A DNA stretch of 64,000 nt, from positions 186,001 through 250,000 of the IMG/VR virus record IMGVR_UViG_3300037010_002844, one strand, 5' to 3'. Every line of letters starts with the position of its first letter. Within the stretch, counting starts at the first letter, position 1. The notes beneath the pieces were generated by a model, which was not told the origin of the DNA, made no database searches, and saw only the letters and a list, made by a program, of their open reading frames with translations. A program made the position numbers and the translations under genes. Of this stretch, positions 28,872 to 42,947 are shown piece by piece.

Positions 28872-29800
28872 AGGTGCACTTCGACGGTGTCAATTTCAAC
28901 TCTTTGTCCGGCCCCAACACCTTCGCAGGCCGCCTAGCCCGTGGGTTGTTCGAGAGCGGACACGAGGTGACGCTCTCGGTAGCCGAGGCCGACGTTTCAC
29001 TGGTCTTCATCGAACGCAGTGGGGCACCCCTTGCCAAGAAAGTCGTCCAGCGCCTAGACGGCGTCTGGTTCAAACCCGAAGAGTTTCACACCAAGAACTC
29101 GAACATCAAGGCGTTGTACGGCGCCGCCGACGCCGTCGTCTTTCAGTCGGAATTTGATCGCAACTTCGTTGAGAAGTGGTGGGGAGGCGTCACCCGGCAC
29201 ACCGTCATCCGCAACGGGATCGACACGGTGCCTCTCAAGGAGTTGACCATTCCGGCGCTGAGCAAATTGGTGCATGATTATGAGCGCATCTACGTCTGCA
29301 GCTCGAATTGGCACCCACAGAAGCGCCTCAAGTCAAACGTTGAACTCTACATGCACCTCCGCGAGAAGCGGCCCAACAGCGCCCTGATCATTATGGGTAA
29401 GGACCCTGACGTGCGTGTGGCAGACCCACACGTCTTCTACACTGGTCCTGTTGGTCCCGATGTCTACATGCAGGTGTATGCTGCAGCCTCATGGATGCTG
29501 CATCTAGCGTGGGCTGACCATTGCCCCAACGTTGTCGTAGAAGCTCTGTCACAAGGAACTCCCGTGGCATGCGCATCCGTGGGTGGAACCAAGGAACTCA
29601 TCGGCTCTTATGGCCACGTCCTACAGGAGCAGCCGTACGACTACACGCTTGAGGACTACGATAATCCACCCATGATCGATGTGAGGCAGGTCGAAGACCT
29701 GCCAGACCGTCGCGATCTCGACTATACCAGCATCGCCGACATCGACATCAAGAATGTCACGCGGCGCTACATTGAACTGTTCGAATCGGTACTCGCATGA
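28868..29800 (+). CDS. GT4-family glycosyltransferase
   Basis: IRNGID, DHCPNVVVEALSQGTPV..VGG..E. Confidence 0.88.
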   Translation: MKVHFDGVNFNSLSGPNTFAGRLARGLFESGHEVTLSVAEADVSLVFIERSGAPLAKKVVQRLDGVWFKPEEFHTKNSNIKALYGAADAVVFQSEFDRNFVEKWWGGVTRHTVIRNGIDTVPLKELTIPALSKLVHDYERIYVCSSNWHPQKRLKSNVELYMHLREKRPNSALIIMGKDPDVRVADPHVFYTGPVGPDVYMQVYAAASWMLHLAWADHCPNVVVEALSQGTPVACASVGGTKELIGSYGHVLQEQPYDYTLEDYDNPPMIDVRQVEDLPDRRDLDYTSIADIDIKNVTRRYIELFESVLA

Positions 29801-30714
29801 ACAAGGTTTACGTGCTGCCTCCCAAAGAAGACTGGATCGTCGACCGCTTCGTCAAGGAATGGAACGAAGACAATGCCGACATCAGCGTCTATCATCCCAA
29901 GGACGCTCACGTTGTTTGGTTGTTGGCCGACTGGTGTTGGGAAGGTCTATCGAACGCGGGATTGTTGCGTTACAAAAAGGTGATCACCACAGTTCATCAC
30001 ATCACACCAGAGAAATTTGGGTTCAAGGAACTCGATGATTTCAGGCAACGCGACCTGGTGACCACAGCCTATCACGTTTACAACGAACGGACGCACTCGT
30101 TCATTAGACCCTTGACTGAAAAGCCTATCCATCTCATCAAGTACTGGGCCAACCAGAAGATCTGGCTGCCGACGTTGGACAAGGGATTGCTGCGGCAGAA
30201 GTACGGGATTCCGACAGATGCCTACGTCATCGGTTCATTCCAACGTGACACAGAAGGTAAGGACCTGAAGAGCCCAAAGCTCGAAAAGGGCCCTGATCTA
30301 CTCGCAGATTTCATCATCCGGAAGCATCGCCAACGAGGCATCATCGGCGACGATAAGGTACACGTGGTCCTGGCAGGTTGGCGACGTCAGTACCTGATTG
30401 GACGTCTAGAAGAGGCGGGCGTCCCGTACACTTACCTGGAACGGCCCCCGCACGAGACGGTCAATGAACTCTACCAGACGCTTGACCTTTACCCGGTCAC
30501 CGCACGTCACGAGGGAGGCCCGCAGTCATTGATCGAGTGTGGCCTGCTCAATGTGCCAGTAGTCTCCAGGCCAGTCGGCATCGCAGAACAGGTGTTGCCT
30601 TCCTCTGCAATTGCTGATGATGTCTTCAACGCTACGCCGGCAATTCCCAACGTAGAGGCATGGAAACTTCCCGCGGGTTATGAGCCCTATAGAAAATTGA
30701 TCGAGTCGCTATGA
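29797..30714 (+). CDS. GT4-family glycosyltransferase
   Basis: EKGPDLL, RHEGGPQSLIEC..LNVPVVSR.VG. Confidence 0.88.
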   Translation: MNKVYVLPPKEDWIVDRFVKEWNEDNADISVYHPKDAHVVWLLADWCWEGLSNAGLLRYKKVITTVHHITPEKFGFKELDDFRQRDLVTTAYHVYNERTHSFIRPLTEKPIHLIKYWANQKIWLPTLDKGLLRQKYGIPTDAYVIGSFQRDTEGKDLKSPKLEKGPDLLADFIIRKHRQRGIIGDDKVHVVLAGWRRQYLIGRLEEAGVPYTYLERPPHETVNELYQTLDLYPVTARHEGGPQSLIECGLLNVPVVSRPVGIAEQVLPSSAIADDVFNATPAIPNVEAWKLPAGYEPYRKLIESL

Positions 30715-30965
30715 ACTACGAAGAACTGGCTGAGAAAGTCCGTCACACCCTCGAAACATGGGAGAAAGGCCACATATCGAACGGTGAGTTCCACAGTCGG
30801 ATCTACGATCTAGTCTGGGACCCACGAGAGTTTGAGGCACTCGAGGCCGGTGAGACTGTCATGGCATTTGGCTCGTGTTGCTGCAGCGAACATCCACCTG
30901 ACAGGACATTCAAGTGCGAGATCACGATTCAACCTCACGGATACACCATCAAGAGGTGCGAGTGA
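30711..30965 (+). CDS. Hypothetical protein
   Basis: 84 aa, coupled on both sides. Confidence 0.6.
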   Translation: MNYEELAEKVRHTLETWEKGHISNGEFHSRIYDLVWDPREFEALEAGETVMAFGSCCCSEHPPDRTFKCEITIQPHGYTIKRCE

Positions 30966-31774
30966 GTGTCAAATTCTTGATGGTGACGTGTTGCCTGGAG
31001 CCGACCCGCGTCGAGATCCTGAAGTCTGTCATCAAGAACATTCAGGAACAGGCGCCAGAGCTTGTCACTGATCTCACGGTCTTCGACAATGCCTCAAACC
31101 AACCAGACGTTCACGAGTTGCTTTACGGAGCCTTCAAGAACGTCTATGTGGCAGACTCCAACGTGGGTTATTGGACCGCCATCGACTGGTGGCTGCGTTC
31201 GTTAGAGTCAGATCCTCCGAAGTACACGTACATCATCGAATCAGACATGATGCACTATGACTTCAACAAGATCTGGACCGCAGCCTCCTACCTCGACACC
31301 CACCCAGAGATCGGTGCAGTTCGACTCCATGAATACGACTACGATAACAGGCACCTTTACGACAAAGACCGGCCACTACCAGAATCACGGCGTAACATCT
31401 GGCAGTCGCACACCAACAAGGTCAACGGCAAGCGCGTTTCATTTGAAGAGTCAGAACAACCCGGCATCCTGAAGACAACGTTCCTGACACAGCTGCCTGC
31501 CCTCAATCGTTATTCAGCCATGGTCGAGTCATTCAGAAGGCTGCGCGGGATGCCCAAGTTTTCTGAGCTAGATTTCCAGCGGGCGTATTACGTGCAGTAT
31601 CCCATCAATGCCATCCTCGATGGTGGCATCTTCAATGCTGACGCGGCGAGCTGGGGAACCAAGACTGTGACGGGCTCGTGGTCAACGCCTGAAGAACTTG
31701 CCAAGATTGGTTACAAGAGCACCCGCTATGCCAACATCGTGGGTCCCGAAGGGTACAAAGTCACCAGGCTGTGA
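30962..31774 (+). CDS. GT2-like glycosyltransferase
   Basis: GTG start coupled to the upstream stop; TVFDNAS, SNVGY..A, YIIESD. Confidence 0.75.
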   Translation: MSVKFLMVTCCLEPTRVEILKSVIKNIQEQAPELVTDLTVFDNASNQPDVHELLYGAFKNVYVADSNVGYWTAIDWWLRSLESDPPKYTYIIESDMMHYDFNKIWTAASYLDTHPEIGAVRLHEYDYDNRHLYDKDRPLPESRRNIWQSHTNKVNGKRVSFEESEQPGILKTTFLTQLPALNRYSAMVESFRRLRGMPKFSELDFQRAYYVQYPINAILDGGIFNADAASWGTKTVTGSWSTPEELAKIGYKSTRYANIVGPEGYKVTRL

Positions 31775-37872: not shown

Positions 37873-38883
37873 ATGCGCGAGTTTGGCGTCTACATTGGGC
37901 GATTTCAGCCCTTTCACAATGCGCACCTAGAGATGGTGCGTTTCGCTCTTAAGCAGGCCAAGCGCCTCATCATCGTCGTCGGTAGCGACAACCAGGCAAG
38001 GAACGTCAAAAACCCCTGGACGACTGCGGAACGAATCAACATGATTCGTGGACCGCTCACTGACGAAGAGCGAGCGCGGGTTGATTTCATCCCCGCCAAG
38101 GACTACCTCTACAACGACAACCTCTGGATCACTGCGGTACAGCGCTCAATCGATGAGGTCACTGACGGGTCAAAGGATGTCATCTTGGTCGGTCACAAGA
38201 AGGACGCCTCGAGCTTCTACTTGAAGCTGTTCCCACAGTGGGACTTCGTGGAGACCGGAATCACAATGGATGTCGATGCAACTCATATCCGTGAGTTGAT
38301 GTTCACGCAGGACAAGATCGGCATTAAGAACCTGGTGCCCGAGGCTGTTTACGGCCAACTTCTGGCGTTCATGGCAACGTCCGAGTTCCAGCGACTCCAC
38401 GAGGAGTACCACCACATCGCGGCGTACAAGGCCTCGTGGGACGGTGCACCCTTCCCTCCGACGTTCAATACCGTCGATGCCATCGTGGTCTGCAGTGGTC
38501 ACGTCCTCGTCGTCCGCCGCCGTGGTGCTCCGGGCAAGGGTTTGATCGCCCTGCCAGGAGGATTCCTGAACGTCAACGAAAAGATCGTCGATGGGATGGT
38601 CCGTGAGCTCAAGGAAGAGACAGGCATCAAGGTTCCGCCCCTCGAGTTGAAGAAGGTCATCGTCGATCAGCGGGTCTTCGATCATCCTGGTCGCTCGCTC
38701 CGCGGACGCACCATCACGCATGCCTTCTGTATCAAGCTTCCCGACGGGGAGCTACCGCAGGTCAAAGGCATGGACGATGCCGACAAGGCCTGGTGGATGC
38801 CTCTGCGAGACGTCTTCTCTCGGGAAGATCAGTTCTTCGAGGATCACTTCCACGTCATCAATTACTTCGTCAACCGCTTCTAA
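37873..38883 (+). CDS. nadM: Bifunctional NMN adenylyltransferase / ADP-ribose pyrophosphatase (NadM-Nudix, NatV-like)
   Basis: GRFQPFHNAH (HxxH), GHKKD.SS.YL, Nudix box GGF...E....MVRELKEETG. Confidence 0.93.
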   Translation: MREFGVYIGRFQPFHNAHLEMVRFALKQAKRLIIVVGSDNQARNVKNPWTTAERINMIRGPLTDEERARVDFIPAKDYLYNDNLWITAVQRSIDEVTDGSKDVILVGHKKDASSFYLKLFPQWDFVETGITMDVDATHIRELMFTQDKIGIKNLVPEAVYGQLLAFMATSEFQRLHEEYHHIAAYKASWDGAPFPPTFNTVDAIVVCSGHVLVVRRRGAPGKGLIALPGGFLNVNEKIVDGMVRELKEETGIKVPPLELKKVIVDQRVFDHPGRSLRGRTITHAFCIKLPDGELPQVKGMDDADKAWWMPLRDVFSREDQFFEDHFHVINYFVNRF

Positions 38884-38935
38884 ACCGCCACGATCGGACC
38901 AGAGAGGTCAGCGTGGCACTCACGGAGAGTGAATC

Positions 38936-40324
38936 ATGTGCAACACCGACTACAACATCATACTAGATTGTGACAGTTACAAGGCTTCGCACTGGCTGCA
39001 ATACCCGCCCAAGACGACCAGCGTCTTCTCGTACATCGAGAGCCGTGGCGGCCGCGACAGCGAGACAGTCGTCTTCGGCCTGCAGTACTTCCTGAAGCGC
39101 TACCTCTCGAGGCCCGTTACCCAGGACAACGTCGATGAGGCCGCCGCGTTCTACGCAGCTCATGGTGAGCCCTTCAACAAGGAAGGTTGGGATCACATCG
39201 TTAAGGACCACGGGGGCAAGTTGCCTCTGCGAATCCGAGCAGTGCCAGAAGGGACCGTCGTCCCGACGTTGAACGCACTGGTCACGGTCGAAAATACCTG
39301 CCCACAATGCTTCTGGACCACCTCGTGGATCGAGACGATGTTGCTCCGCGTCTGGTACCCGATCACGGTGGCGACCGAGAGCCGACACATCAAAAAGCTC
39401 ATCATGAGCTTCCTGGAGAAGACCTCGGATGACCCCAGGGGTGAGATCAACTTCAAGTTGCACGATTTCGGGGCTCGTGGAGTCTCGAGCCAAGAATCGG
39501 CAGCAATCGGTGGCGCCGCGCACCTGGTCAACTTCATGGGCAGCGACACTGTCGTTGGCGTGATGACCGCGAATCGTTACTACAAGACGCCAATGGCCGC
39601 GTTCTCAATTCCAGCTGCTGAGCACTCGACCATTACCTCGTGGGGCAAGGAGAACGAGGCGGAGGCCTACCGCAACATGCTACGGAACTTCGCTAAGCCT
39701 GGAGCACTGGTCGCGGTGGTCAGCGACTCGTACGACATCTACAATGCCTGTGAGCACATCTGGGGCGAGACCCTGCGTCAGGAGGTCAAGGATTCGGGCG
39801 CCATCGTGGTGGTACGTCCGGATTCGGGTCACCCGCCAACCGTGGTGCTCAACTGTCTGCGACTCTTGGAGTCCAAGTTCGGTTCAACTGTCAACTCGAA
39901 GGGCTACAAGGTCCTGAACAACGTTCGCGTCATCCAAGGTGACGGAATCAACCGTGACAGCATCTATGCGATCCTGGACGCGGCGGTGAAGGCCGGCTTC
40001 TCGGCGACCAACATCGCCTTCGGCATGGGAGGCGCGTTGTTGCAGCAACACAACCGCGATACGCAGAAGTTCGCCATGAAGTGTAGTCATATTGTGGCAG
40101 ACGGCCTTGAGATCGACGTCTTCAAGGAACCAGTGACCGACTCGGGCAAGCGCTCGAAGAAGGGGCGTCTGGACCTCGAGGTCTTTGAGGGGCGATTCAC
40201 CACGGGCCGAGTCCCAGTTGGCAAAGAGAAGCTGCCGTACTCAATCATGGAGACGGTGTTCCTGGACGGTGAGGTCCTGAAAGAATACACCCTCGATGAG
40301 GTGCGAGCCCGCGCAGCCCTGTGA
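38936..40324 (+). CDS. nadV: Nicotinamide phosphoribosyltransferase (NAMPT)
   Basis: DSYKASH..QYP, LHDFGARG, SIPAAEHS, VVSDSYD, VRPDSG, IQGDG, FGMGGALLQ. Confidence 0.95.
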   Translation: MCNTDYNIILDCDSYKASHWLQYPPKTTSVFSYIESRGGRDSETVVFGLQYFLKRYLSRPVTQDNVDEAAAFYAAHGEPFNKEGWDHIVKDHGGKLPLRIRAVPEGTVVPTLNALVTVENTCPQCFWTTSWIETMLLRVWYPITVATESRHIKKLIMSFLEKTSDDPRGEINFKLHDFGARGVSSQESAAIGGAAHLVNFMGSDTVVGVMTANRYYKTPMAAFSIPAAEHSTITSWGKENEAEAYRNMLRNFAKPGALVAVVSDSYDIYNACEHIWGETLRQEVKDSGAIVVVRPDSGHPPTVVLNCLRLLESKFGSTVNSKGYKVLNNVRVIQGDGINRDSIYAILDAAVKAGFSATNIAFGMGGALLQQHNRDTQKFAMKCSHIVADGLEIDVFKEPVTDSGKRSKKGRLDLEVFEGRFTTGRVPVGKEKLPYSIMETVFLDGEVLKEYTLDEVRARAAL

Positions 40325-41074: not shown

Positions 41075-41422
41075 ATGAAGAACATCTATTTGCGCGTACT
41101 TCGCGCCAAGATCCGCGGTCTGCAGGCCACCGGCGTTTCGATCCACAATCGTATCCGCAAGACGAGCGGCAAGCGACGTGATTCGCTGTGGCAGGAAAAG
41201 CGAAGGATTGGAACCTTCAACAGGGAGCACCTGATTGCTTACGGTTTGCTTCGCGGCATCCCGTATGAGAGGATTGAACATTGCTCAAACGTAAATCGAC
41301 CCAGTCCCGCAAGGATTCACGAGCTGATGCTCGCCCACATGCCTCCTTGGGAGGCAAAAAAGCTCACGGTGGAGGCGGTGCAGGCCCTTCTCGAGCCCAC
41401 GGAAAAAAGGCTCGAAAAATGA
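41075..41422 (+). CDS. Basic hypothetical protein
   Basis: GAGAGGA SD; R..HLIAYGLLRG.PYE.IE motif; coupled to the PTH2-like gene. Confidence 0.75.
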   Translation: MKNIYLRVLRAKIRGLQATGVSIHNRIRKTSGKRRDSLWQEKRRIGTFNREHLIAYGLLRGIPYERIEHCSNVNRPSPARIHELMLAHMPPWEAKKLTVEAVQALLEPTEKRLEK

Positions 41423-41778
41423 GTGGTGGAAACCACAAGGTTAAGACGGGGGATAAATTGTACCTCGTCACGCGGCGAGACATTGCGCCTGGTTACCAGG
41501 CCGTGCAGTCTTGCCATGCCATTCGACAGTTCACGGCTGATCATCCTGATCGCGATGGTGAGTGGTTTACCAACTCTAACTACCTCGCGTTGCTGTCAGT
41601 GGCCGATGAGGTAGAGCTGATGCGTCTTATCACCGCTGCCAAGGACCATGGCCTGCGTTGGAGTGCTTTCCGTGAACCTAACGTGGGAGGCGCCATCACG
41701 GCGATCGCCATCGAGCCACATCCCAAGACGGCAGAGCTCTGTAAGAACCTGCCACTGGCGCTCAAGGAACTGTCATGA
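41419..41778 (+). CDS. Peptidyl-tRNA hydrolase II (PTH2)-fold protein
   Basis: Start moved to MSGGNH; KLYLVTRRDI..G..AVQSCHA, L.LSV.DE.EL, FREP...GAITAIAIEP. Confidence 0.7.
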   Translation: MSGGNHKVKTGDKLYLVTRRDIAPGYQAVQSCHAIRQFTADHPDRDGEWFTNSNYLALLSVADEVELMRLITAAKDHGLRWSAFREPNVGGAITAIAIEPHPKTAELCKNLPLALKELS

Positions 41779-42131
41779 GCGACGAACACAAGGCGCCCGA
41801 CACAATCACCTTCGATGACTTCTTGAAGGTCGATATTCGTGTGGGCGAAATCACTAAGTCAGAGGCAGTGCCCAAGAGCGACAAACTTGTCAAGCTCGAG
41901 GTCTACTTTGGATCCGAGATCGGCTATCGCACCATTATGGCCGGCATCGCTAAGAGCTACCACGTGGAGATGTTGGTCGGCACTCGGGTGTTGGCCGTGG
42001 TCAACCTTGCGCCTCGCAAGATGATGGGCGTTGAATCACACGGAATGCTTCTAGCAGGACATGACCCGGTGACGGGCACAGTTACACTTGCCACGTGTAT
42101 GGGAGTTCCCTGGGGAGAACGAATCGGTTGA
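41775..42131 (+). CDS. tRNA-binding OB-fold protein (Trbp111/CsaA/MetRS C-terminal-like)
   Basis: ITFDDF.KVDIRVG.I..E.VP.SDKL, VVNL.PRKMMGVESHGMLLA. Confidence 0.9.
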   Translation: MSDEHKAPDTITFDDFLKVDIRVGEITKSEAVPKSDKLVKLEVYFGSEIGYRTIMAGIAKSYHVEMLVGTRVLAVVNLAPRKMMGVESHGMLLAGHDPVTGTVTLATCMGVPWGERIG

Positions 42132-42138
42132 GCAAGGG

Positions 42139-42165
42139 CGGGCGGTGAAATTCACCGCCCGTTTT
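42139..42165 (+). terminator. Intrinsic terminator
   Basis: CGGGCGGTG-AAATT-CACCGCCCG followed by TTTT. Confidence 0.75.
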
Positions 42166-42172
42166 GCTTGCC

Positions 42173-42781
42173 ATGAATCATGGCAACGGAAATCGCGAAA
42201 GTTTCTTCAGGCATTTGGATTCGTTCCTAGCCCCGAGCGTCATCCTCAACGTGCAGCATGCCTACACGATGGCAAAGTATGGCAACCGCGCGTAGGTTCG
42301 AAAGGAATTGGACGACCACGGTGATCCCGTCAGGTACTTCGAGCACGTGCGCCAAGTGGCCATCGTCCTGATCGACAAGGCCAAGATCGTCAAGTCAGAG
42401 ATGATAATCTCTGCGTTGCTCCATGACGTGGCGGAAGACGCTCCCAACCTGCCGCCCGTGTTGATCGAGCGCTGCTTCGGCACCGATGTCATCGAGATCA
42501 TCAAGACTTTGAACAAGGTGCCCGAGGAAGGTTATTTTGAGTGCTTCAACATGTCGACCGACTGGCGTCCGTTCATCAAGGCACGTGATCGGCTCGACAA
42601 TCTCAGGACGTTGGGGGCAGCCTCTAAGGAGTTCCGTGTCAAGCAGGTCGCAGAGACCCGCGAGAAGTACTTTCCGTTGTTCGACGTCATGATGACTCTG
42701 ACGCCCGCACCTATCTCAATCACCCCCAGACGCTGCGTGACCTGGTCCGAGCCGAGACGGAGAAACAAGTGCTGCTACTGA
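42173..42781 (+). pseudogene. HD-domain (RelA/SpoT hydrolase, Mesh1-like) gene interrupted by in-frame TAG
   Basis: ATG 42173, TAG 42293-95 in A*VRK; ALLHDVAED and DRLDNLR motifs; C-terminus looks degenerate. Confidence 0.8.
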
Positions 42782-42800
42782 CCGTACAATTTTGAGGTTT

Positions 42801-42873
42801 GCCTCGGTAGCTTAGCGGGCTAAAGCTGCGGTCTCTAAAACCGCGATCGTGGGTTCGACTCCCACTCGGGGCA
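42801..42873 (+). tRNA. tRNA-Sup, anticodon CUA (amber suppressor)
   Basis: Acceptor GCCTCGG/TCGGGGC, D arm GCTT/AAGC, anticodon stem GCGGT/ACCGC with loop CT-CTA-AA, T arm GTGGG-TTCGACT-CCCAC; CCA not encoded. Confidence 0.9.
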
Positions 42874-42875
42874 CT

Positions 42876-42947
42876 GCTCCTGTAACTCAATGGCAGAGTG
42901 ACGGATTCTAACACCATGCGTTGAGGGTTCAAGTCCCTTCGGGAGCG
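42876..42947 (+). tRNA. Second tRNA with CUA anticodon, anticodon stem degenerate (possibly pseudo)
   Basis: Acceptor GCTCCTG/CGGGAGC, D arm ACTC/GAGT, loop TT-CTA-AC, stem ACGGA/ACCAT with 2 mismatches, T arm GAGGG-TTCAAGT-CCCTT. Confidence 0.75.

Follow-up and report, generated by a model that had tools for sequence, protein, structure and literature searches.

Introduction

The closest described relatives of the gene studied here are the small alarmone hydrolases (SAHs) and the hydrolase domains of long RelA/SpoT proteins, represented by Mesh1 (PDB: 3nqw, 5vxa), the P. aeruginosa SAH (6yvc, 6z3n), C. glutamicum RelH (7qoc), T. thermophilus Rel (6s2t) and RelSeq (1vj7). SAHs counteract toxic alarmone synthetases whose products are (pp)pApp or tRNAs pyrophosphorylated at their 3′ (CCA) ends, and these synthetases take part in defence against phages (PMC7229694; 10.1101/2021.04.30.441581; PMC9712102; PMC11782079). 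With respect to stop codons, the nearest precedent is the standard-code phage with suppressor tRNAs, a category already known (10.1101/2021.08.26.457843; PMC12636597) and proposed to be a stage towards recoding (10.1101/2021.08.26.457843; PMC9523058; PMC12636597).

Here we analyse a 64,000-nt stretch of a huge-phage genome (the window) in which a decayed new member of this known hydrolase family adjoins two CUA tRNAs. The family shares with SAHs, Mesh1 and Rel the H...HD...ED...D-x-x-x-N and R-K motifs and the fold, in a single domain of ~205 aa with no synthetase domain. Unlike those proteins, it is phage-borne among tRNA-related genes, with stop-anticodon tRNAs directly downstream, and the window copy is broken by a TAG, a frameshift and nine departures from near-invariant residues. 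As with the toxSAS-antitoxin SAHs (PMC7229694; 10.1101/2021.04.30.441581; PMC11782079), we find a stand-alone SAH-type hydrolase in what may be a conflict setting; in contrast to them, the phage has no toxSAS partner and the window copy is probably a pseudogene. The phage resembles the suppressor-tRNA phages in encoding CUA tRNAs (10.1101/2021.08.26.457843; PMC9523058; PMC12636597), but differs from recoded phages in that no gene set is recoded, and TAG works as a terminator whose one homology-supported in-frame occurrence is in a gene under decay; moreover, the tRNAs of its closest relatives would read UGA although TGA is the main stop of those phages.

Results

A predicted stand-alone alarmone hydrolase family in huge phages

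The window comprises bases 186001-250000 of one 309,433-bp virus record with an estimated completeness of 91% (CheckV), from a huge (jumbo) phage of sediment and microbial-mat metagenomes. The genome, at 54% G+C, encodes 49 tRNAs and one tmRNA and reads well in the standard code, with ORFs of up to 1,681 aa. No near or distant DNA match was found in an annotated phage collection; the top tblastn match was the 485-kb uncultured phage LR745208.1, in which the hydrolase gene is intact (46% identity). Gene counts below refer to a home-made model that scores ORFs by codon usage and comprises 325 of them, none overlapping. The features of the locus are collected in Table 1.

Table 1. Features of the hydrolase locus; positions are those of the window unless a related locus is named.
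Feature	Position	Strand	Basis
PTH2-type peptidyl-tRNA hydrolase gene, syntenic neighbour	41281..41778	+	Pfam PTH2 1.6e-07; same neighbour in relatives
tRNA-binding-domain protein gene, syntenic neighbour	41775..42131	+	Pfam tRNA_bind 2.3e-22; same neighbour in relatives
Strong hairpin, then UUUUGCUU up to the ATG	42137..42172	+	MFE -31.8 kcal/mol, z = -4.66
Probable pseudogene of a stand-alone RelA/SpoT-type HD hydrolase (SAH-like)	42173..42781	+	Frame 0, ATG to TGA 42779-42781, reached past the frameshift
AAC (Asn) replacing the invariant His of H-R-A-Q	42284..42286	+	Alignment, codons of relatives
In-frame TAG replacing the invariant Gln codon	42293..42295	+	Translation; CAG in nearest relatives
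1-nt deletion (frameshift) relative to all relatives	42705..42710	+	Single-base gap, DNA alignment
Out-of-frame remnant of the ancestral C-terminal helix	42711..42795	+	Other-frame translation, ends at TGA 42793-42795
tRNA 1, anticodon CUA	42801..42873	+	ARAGORN; Rfam tRNA RF00005 60.4 bits
tRNA 2, anticodon CUA	42876..42947	+	ARAGORN; Rfam tRNA RF00005 48.8 bits
UCA tRNAs of relatives, 8-nt anticodon loop	L004:4622-4785, L006:4621-4781, L007:4622-4780, L013:3618-3770; L010, L011, L014, L016, L017, L020, L041		

Solely for the search and alignment of the broken gene, the TAG was taken as Gln by reference. The resulting window protein matches Pfam HD_4 over residues 48-119 (36.7 bits, cut-off 27.2) and TIGR00691 spoT_relA partially, at its N-terminus (E 6.5e-11), and it also matches a Rel chain (E 2.4e-7) and a Mesh1 chain (E 1e-6). 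A word search yielded 634 homologues, the best intact ones being ~205 aa long and 76% identical to the window protein, and the homologue alignments end at 85% of the window query; relatives were collected via motif patterns that favour intact genes. A profile of the family matches solved chains with E values from 8e-15 (Mesh1, 3nqw) to 2e-5, among them Thermus Rel, RelSeq and bacterial SAHs. The AlphaFold2 model of an intact relative (P0002, mean pLDDT 89.2) is assigned by Foldseek to the same Rel, Mesh1 and SAH proteins with probability 1.00 and TM scores of 0.55-0.69. Assignment to the RelA/SpoT HD hydrolases, first made from the letters of the window, thus stands on both the HD_4 match and the predicted fold of the family. 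Profile scans of the genome found neither a second HD_4 gene nor a RelA_SpoT synthetase domain; with a single HD_4 gene and no alarmone-synthetase domain, the family therefore appears to be that of a stand-alone small alarmone hydrolase. The same scans speak against redundancy as the cause of gene loss.

The window translation keeps the His of Y-F-E-H, H-D, E-D, D-R-L-D-N (D-x-x-x-N) and R-K, all of which align to T. thermophilus Rel. The first four we take to have the metal-binding and catalytic roles known from RelSeq and Mesh1. Elsewhere in the family, in a 268-kb huge-phage contig (L047:3001-3345), the open frame covers no more of the hydrolase than its C-terminal half (family residues 101-202), which may be a second, independent decay of the gene.

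An in-frame TAG at the invariant glutamine codon

The frame from ATG 42173 has one internal stop only, the TAG at 42293-42295. Where the best intact homologues read A-K-Y-G-H-R-A-Q-V-R-K, the window reads A-K-Y-G-N-R-A-TAG-V-R-K, so that the H-R-x-Q-x-R-K motif is broken twice. The His and Gln of this motif are invariant in 14/14 aligned sequences, and at the codon level 44/44 related loci have His (CAC/CAT) and Gln (CAG 28, CAA 16), with CAC...CAG in the nearest relatives against AAC...TAG in the window. Among solved structures, the TAG aligns to the Q of H-R-G-Q-L-R-R in Thermus Rel (6s2t) and of H-R-Q-Q-R-R-K in Mesh1 (3nqw). The sequence-only reading had placed the TAG exactly at the conserved Gln, within N-R-A-TAG-V-R-K about 500 nt upstream of amber tRNAs, and had proposed comparing CAG and TAG among relatives; these alignments bear out the placement, the distance is 506 nt from the TAG to the start of tRNA 1, and the comparison returns a Gln codon at all 44 loci and TAG at none. 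When JGI metagenome contigs and IMG/VR were searched with a pattern for this motif carrying TAG, no other hydrolase gene came up and the one match (L049) was due to chance and unrelated, which is weak negative evidence as the pattern demanded exact codons and perhaps excluded the window's own records.

The coincidence of a TAG at a Gln codon with two downstream CUA tRNAs raises the possibility of programmed amber read-through, in which these tRNAs would decode the TAG at 42293 as Gln or another residue, the hydrolase would be made only when the tRNAs are expressed, and an altered C-terminus would be tolerated. A Gln-inserting suppressor would be silent at this site and the stop is of the type readable by both tRNAs, the catalytic motifs are retained, no other in-frame TAG in the genome has homology support, and a purine follows the TAG, a context that favours suppression in E. 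coli. Yet none of the relatives has a stop at this site. Nor does the identity of the stop codon weigh much: 31-39 of the 64-80 one-step nonsense routes available to intact relatives yield TAG (39/80 in L009), and since this is about half of the routes, a stop type that matches the neighbouring anticodon is unsurprising. With the further objections given below, we regard programmed read-through as unlikely.

Alternatively, the 157-aa ORF that starts at TTG 42308 could be a real, shortened and functional product, as it is called as a gene by public pipelines and gene finders and contains the H-D, E-D and D-R-L-D-N motifs. However, it is without the first two helices and the family-invariant R-K motif, which is presumably substrate-binding, and it keeps the frameshifted tail described below. 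The stretch before the TAG, 40 codons long, still shows clear homology to the N-terminus of the family, which marks the ORF as a fragment and not a shorter design, and we find a functional 157-aa product very hard to credit.

A frameshift removes the C-terminal helix

The C-terminus of the window protein had been remarked on as odd, and a real 1-nt deletion lies behind it. When its DNA is aligned with six relatives, the window lacks one base after 42705. The motif that the family has at its C-terminus, ...Y-x-x-x-x-Q-x-L-R-D-x-[IV]-R-x-[EQ]-T-E..., can still be read here once the frame is changed, as ...Y-L-N-H-P-Q-T-L-R-D-L-V-R-A-E-T-E-K-Q.... The deletion shifts the last ~30 codons and leaves a Pro/Arg/Cys-rich tail instead of a helix. 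In the AlphaFold2 model of P0002 the part replaced by the frameshift, residues 177-203 (27 residues), is a single helix with a pLDDT of 96-98, and a nearly invariant Arg lies within the lost stretch. The expectation from the sequence-only reading that suppression would restore a hydrolase of roughly 200 aa consequently fails, as the product with TAG read as Gln would still be without its last helix. Loss of this conserved, confidently predicted helix also counts directly against programmed read-through.

Rescue of the frame itself was considered and rejected in two forms. For programmed -1 frameshifting, inspection by eye of 42698-42712 found no slippery heptamer, and the relatives as well as a sister strain have the extra base. 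For rescue by a quadruplet-reading tRNA, the deletion needs a -1 shift and not +1, and the anticodon loop is 7 nt in tRNA 1 of the window and 7 nt, flanked by a mismatch, in tRNA 2, while that of the relatives' tRNAs is 8 nt.

Signs of decay extend beyond the two lesions

Across 43 homologues, 55 alignment columns are near-invariant (>=95% conserved), and the window departs at nine of them (by alignment column number, E13G, R21H, H45N, Q48stop, R69Q, S122N, R138C, C153R and S161T). The other 43 homologues depart at 0.8 on average and close relatives at 0-1; only one, at 39% identity, exceeds the window. A maximum-likelihood tree places the window within a well-supported 13-member clade (100/99), in which its end branch is the longest (0.48 vs 0.055-0.39). 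For an enzyme maintained through read-through, nine such departures would be difficult to accommodate.

The start region is altered as well. In relatives, the start codon of the hydrolase overlaps the stop of the upstream gene, and the window has lost this coupled start. None of 200 shuffles is as stable as the hairpin at 42137-42172, which is followed by a U-run, and the two elements before the ATG look like a terminator. A Shine-Dalgarno sequence was not seen before ATG 42173. A terminator-like element with no coupled start speaks, again, against programmed read-through.

The lesions recur across samples and the sister strain is diverging

A sequencing or assembly error at the TAG or the frameshift would be the simplest alternative, and the record is a metagenome assembly. 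However, a second JGI sample provides 4,792 bp that are 100% identical to the window DNA. Four runs have the stretch in Logan contigs, and zero differences are seen in the long contigs from three of them and in a 672-nt contig of the fourth (covering 42109-42780). Identical DNA in four runs, with depth up to 16.8, and two JGI assemblies therefore argues that neither lesion is an assembly error, and the concern that the TAG might be a sequencing error, voiced with the first reading, is not borne out. The lesion-bearing strain is dominant in four samples (depth 5.7-16.8 vs 2.8 for the variant), and hence either the gene was lost without obvious cost or it is not really lost.

The variant, a sister strain ~93% identical to the window, is represented by one 237-nt contig (run X2, record 4; depth 2.8 vs 11.9 in X2) that covers window positions 42543-42771 and stops short of the TAG site. 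An extra T behind 42709 restores the family frame in this strain. It differs from the window by 10 substitutions, of which 8 change the amino acid; one returns the window's Arg to the family's invariant Cys, and another turns the invariant Asp of C-D-R-L-D-N, which we take from RelSeq to be a metal-binding residue, into Asn. Eight non-synonymous changes in ten look close to the expectation of unconstrained (neutral) evolution, which this one short and shallow contig supports without deciding. That the sister strain differs mostly non-synonymously, and in the frame itself, sits poorly with programmed read-through. The suspicion of decay that the sequence-only reading drew from the His-to-Asn change and the C-terminus is thus reinforced by the frameshift, the nine near-invariant departures and this neutral-looking divergence.

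TAG is an ordinary stop codon in this genome

The presence of two amber tRNAs would also be compatible with TAG being read as Gln throughout the genome (code 15). In our model, however, TAG ends 29 of the 325 genes (TGA 256, TAA 40). Pairs of coding-like ORFs that keep one frame on both sides of a stop were found 4 times for TAG, 6 for TAA and 33 for TGA. In each case they make up 13-15% of the genes with that stop, and split genes are not in excess at TAG; all four TAG junctions have an ATG in the first codons or a clear downstream start, which makes them boundaries between separate genes. A scan of every gene for upstream in-frame stops gave, besides the hydrolase, one junction between neighbouring genes and one weak 60-codon acidic stretch, and the hydrolase holds the only homology-supported in-frame TAG in the 309 kb. 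The median distance to the next stop is 20 codons behind TAG-ending genes and 18 behind TGA-ending genes (Mann-Whitney p = 0.98), that is, with no excess of back-up stops behind TAG.

We therefore reject genome-wide TAG recoding, for which read-through ORF statistics, same-frame junctions, upstream stops and back-up stops all gave no signal. Of the marks of a TAG-to-Gln recoded phage (genetic code 15), this phage has a CUA suppressor tRNA and lacks a conserved set of in-frame TAG codons. With the lesions recurring identically across runs and TAG terminating genes as a rule, an explanation by error or by code 15 is highly improbable.

The acidic stretch (M-T-I-D-L-L-S-L-D-L-S-D-L-T-E..., genome 31165-31370, minus strand) is joined in frame via TAG to a 461-aa gene (29779-31164) and would be, besides the hydrolase, the genome's one further candidate for TAG read-through, a weak one. 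The phage also encodes a release-factor-like ORF (genome 260577-260894, minus strand; locus L050:1453-2271) with an RF-1 domain (107 bits) and GGQ, with P-P-T where RF1 has P-x-T and apparently without the N-terminal domain. An RF1-type phage factor would compete with amber suppressor tRNAs at UAG.

Stop-anticodon tRNAs belong to the ancestral locus

tRNA 1 has a canonical 7-nt anticodon loop (C-U-CUA-A-A) and discriminator A73, whereas tRNA 2 has discriminator G73 and two anticodon-stem mismatches (two non-standard pairs are marked); neither encodes CCA, as is the case for 21 of the phage's 49 tRNAs, these two included. The closest tRNA to tRNA 2 is the CUA tRNA of relative L015 (79%). Among the phage's 47 other tRNAs no clear parent of the CUA tRNAs was found, the best being Val and Lys at 0.70-0.75. 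By discriminator bases and one-step anticodon routes, charging with Trp, Gln, Lys or Glu is in each case possible. At window 42874-42876, two bases separate the CUA tRNAs and both CCA ends are gone (C-A-C-T and T-C-A), while the spacers between the relatives' tRNAs are 4-13 nt long, after an encoded CCA.

Further observations on the tRNA complement lie outside the window. The CCA-adding enzyme gene (Pfam PolyA_pol; genome 60570-61449, minus strand) is split into open frames of 155 and 292 codons in different frames, and the translation of the ~200-300 nt between the parts includes ...K-I-R-Y-V-G-I-T..., loosely like GIY-YIG homing endonucleases. This may be what is left of an intron or a homing endonuclease, or else another gene that has been broken. 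All on the minus strand, the genome also encodes the tmRNA (162403-162774, tag ANDNGVAPLALAA), a tRNA with an ARAGORN anticodon call of UUA (ochre-like; 288775-288850) and a tRNA-like gene of 96 nt whose called anticodon has four bases, 'gttc' (265523-265618).

The surroundings of the hydrolase are conserved among relatives, in the order NMNAT-NUDIX, NAMPT, dual-specificity phosphatase, PTH2, tRNA-binding-domain protein (in variable position), hydrolase, tRNA(s), small ORF, PD-(D/E)XK nuclease and glycosyltransferases. At the five loci fetched by protein identity and at 15 of 40 IMG/VR loci, the hydrolase is intact and has one or two tRNAs behind it, often 4-15 nt past the hydrolase stop or overlapping it. 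All carry stop anticodons except at the odd locus L032. CUA is found at L015, L038 (two tRNAs), L044/L045 and the window, while UCA is the commonest anticodon and occurs in every readable member of the window's clade (L004, L006, L007, L010, L011 and L013). These UCA tRNAs have an 8-nt anticodon loop with a conserved core, U-UCA-A, and one extra 5′ base, where Infernal places a 1-nt insertion. Sampled genes of the phages with UCA tRNAs end in TGA in 76 of 97 cases, and weak UGA suppression, UGA-A quadruplet reading or another role are all possible for these tRNAs. In the acceptor, D and T stems of 25 locus tRNAs from 15 phages, pairing holds in 97.5% of cells, and 15 of the 16 stem pairs change on both sides, a result reached by 0/500 shuffles; these compensatory changes indicate that the genes are maintained as tRNAs.

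Because tRNAs occupy the same place beside intact hydrolases, the adjacency is ancestral and gives no evidence of a link to the TAG. Their synteny with intact hydrolase genes is likewise at odds with programmed read-through of the window copy. We found nothing specific in the literature on natural UCA tRNAs with an 8-nt anticodon loop in phages, nor a description of such tRNAs in phages that end their genes mostly with TGA, nor one of a tight, conserved pairing of this hydrolase with stop-anticodon tRNAs.

Further upstream, at window 37873-40324 (plus strand), an NMNAT-like cytidylyltransferase-NUDIX fusion (37873-38883) adjoins NAMPT (38936-40324), and this pair is conserved upstream of the hydrolase locus in relatives. 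We take it to be a two-gene NAD+ salvage set, of the kind that phages use against NAD-depleting defences.

Discussion

Taken together, the sequence evidence points to a pseudogene at 42173-42781: most likely, a phage gene for a small alarmone hydrolase was inactivated here not long ago. We infer that its protein is inactive and that the CUA tRNAs do not serve the hydrolase gene. In intact relatives, the product would be an all-helical, Mn-dependent HD enzyme of ~205 aa of the Rel/SpoT/Mesh1 kind, as predicted. Translation of its gene would be coupled to that of the tRNA-related genes upstream, and one or two stop-reading tRNAs lie a few bases past its end. In the phage studied here the gene has at least two disabling lesions: codon 41 has gone from CAG to TAG, and near codon 178 a 1-nt deletion removes the last helix. 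Many positions that are invariant elsewhere have changed too, and the start is no longer coupled. The amber tRNAs beside the gene reflect ancestral gene order.

Transcripts, if made, would give a 40-residue fragment. Some ribosomes may pass the TAG by way of the amber tRNAs, and such occasional suppression would yield a full-length chain without the last helix, scrambled at its C-terminus. Since the core catalytic residues are retained and the HD_4 match remains above the cut-off, the decay is likely to be recent and some activity of a read-through product may remain.

A broader alternative holds that the hydrolase and the adjoining stop-reading tRNAs form one conserved functional module in a clade of standard-code huge phages, possibly acting on host translation or against a tRNA- or alarmone-based defence, and that the phage studied here, after a switch to CUA, tolerates or uses TAG at a Gln codon as a first step of codon capture; we consider this improbable. 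For the family itself, the genomic context, with tRNA-directed neighbours (PTH2, tRNA-binding domain, tRNAs) and a pair of NAD-salvage genes, would suit an island for counter-defence or for maintaining translation, and a role in undoing tRNA damage or removing alarmones fits the same context.

In sum, the locus is a cautionary case: a stop codon that interrupts the frame at a conserved residue, close to suppressor tRNAs able to read it, can be plain gene decay, and claims of read-through or altered code need a frame check, a conserved-site check and a look at relatives. Of more interest is the by-product of the analysis, a huge-phage clade in which the gene for a small alarmone hydrolase stays closely linked to one or two stop-reading tRNAs, although the clade's own genes end with the same stop codons, mainly TGA. 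For work on phage recoding, the locus provides a defined and comparable set of examples on the role of stop tRNAs in standard-code phages.
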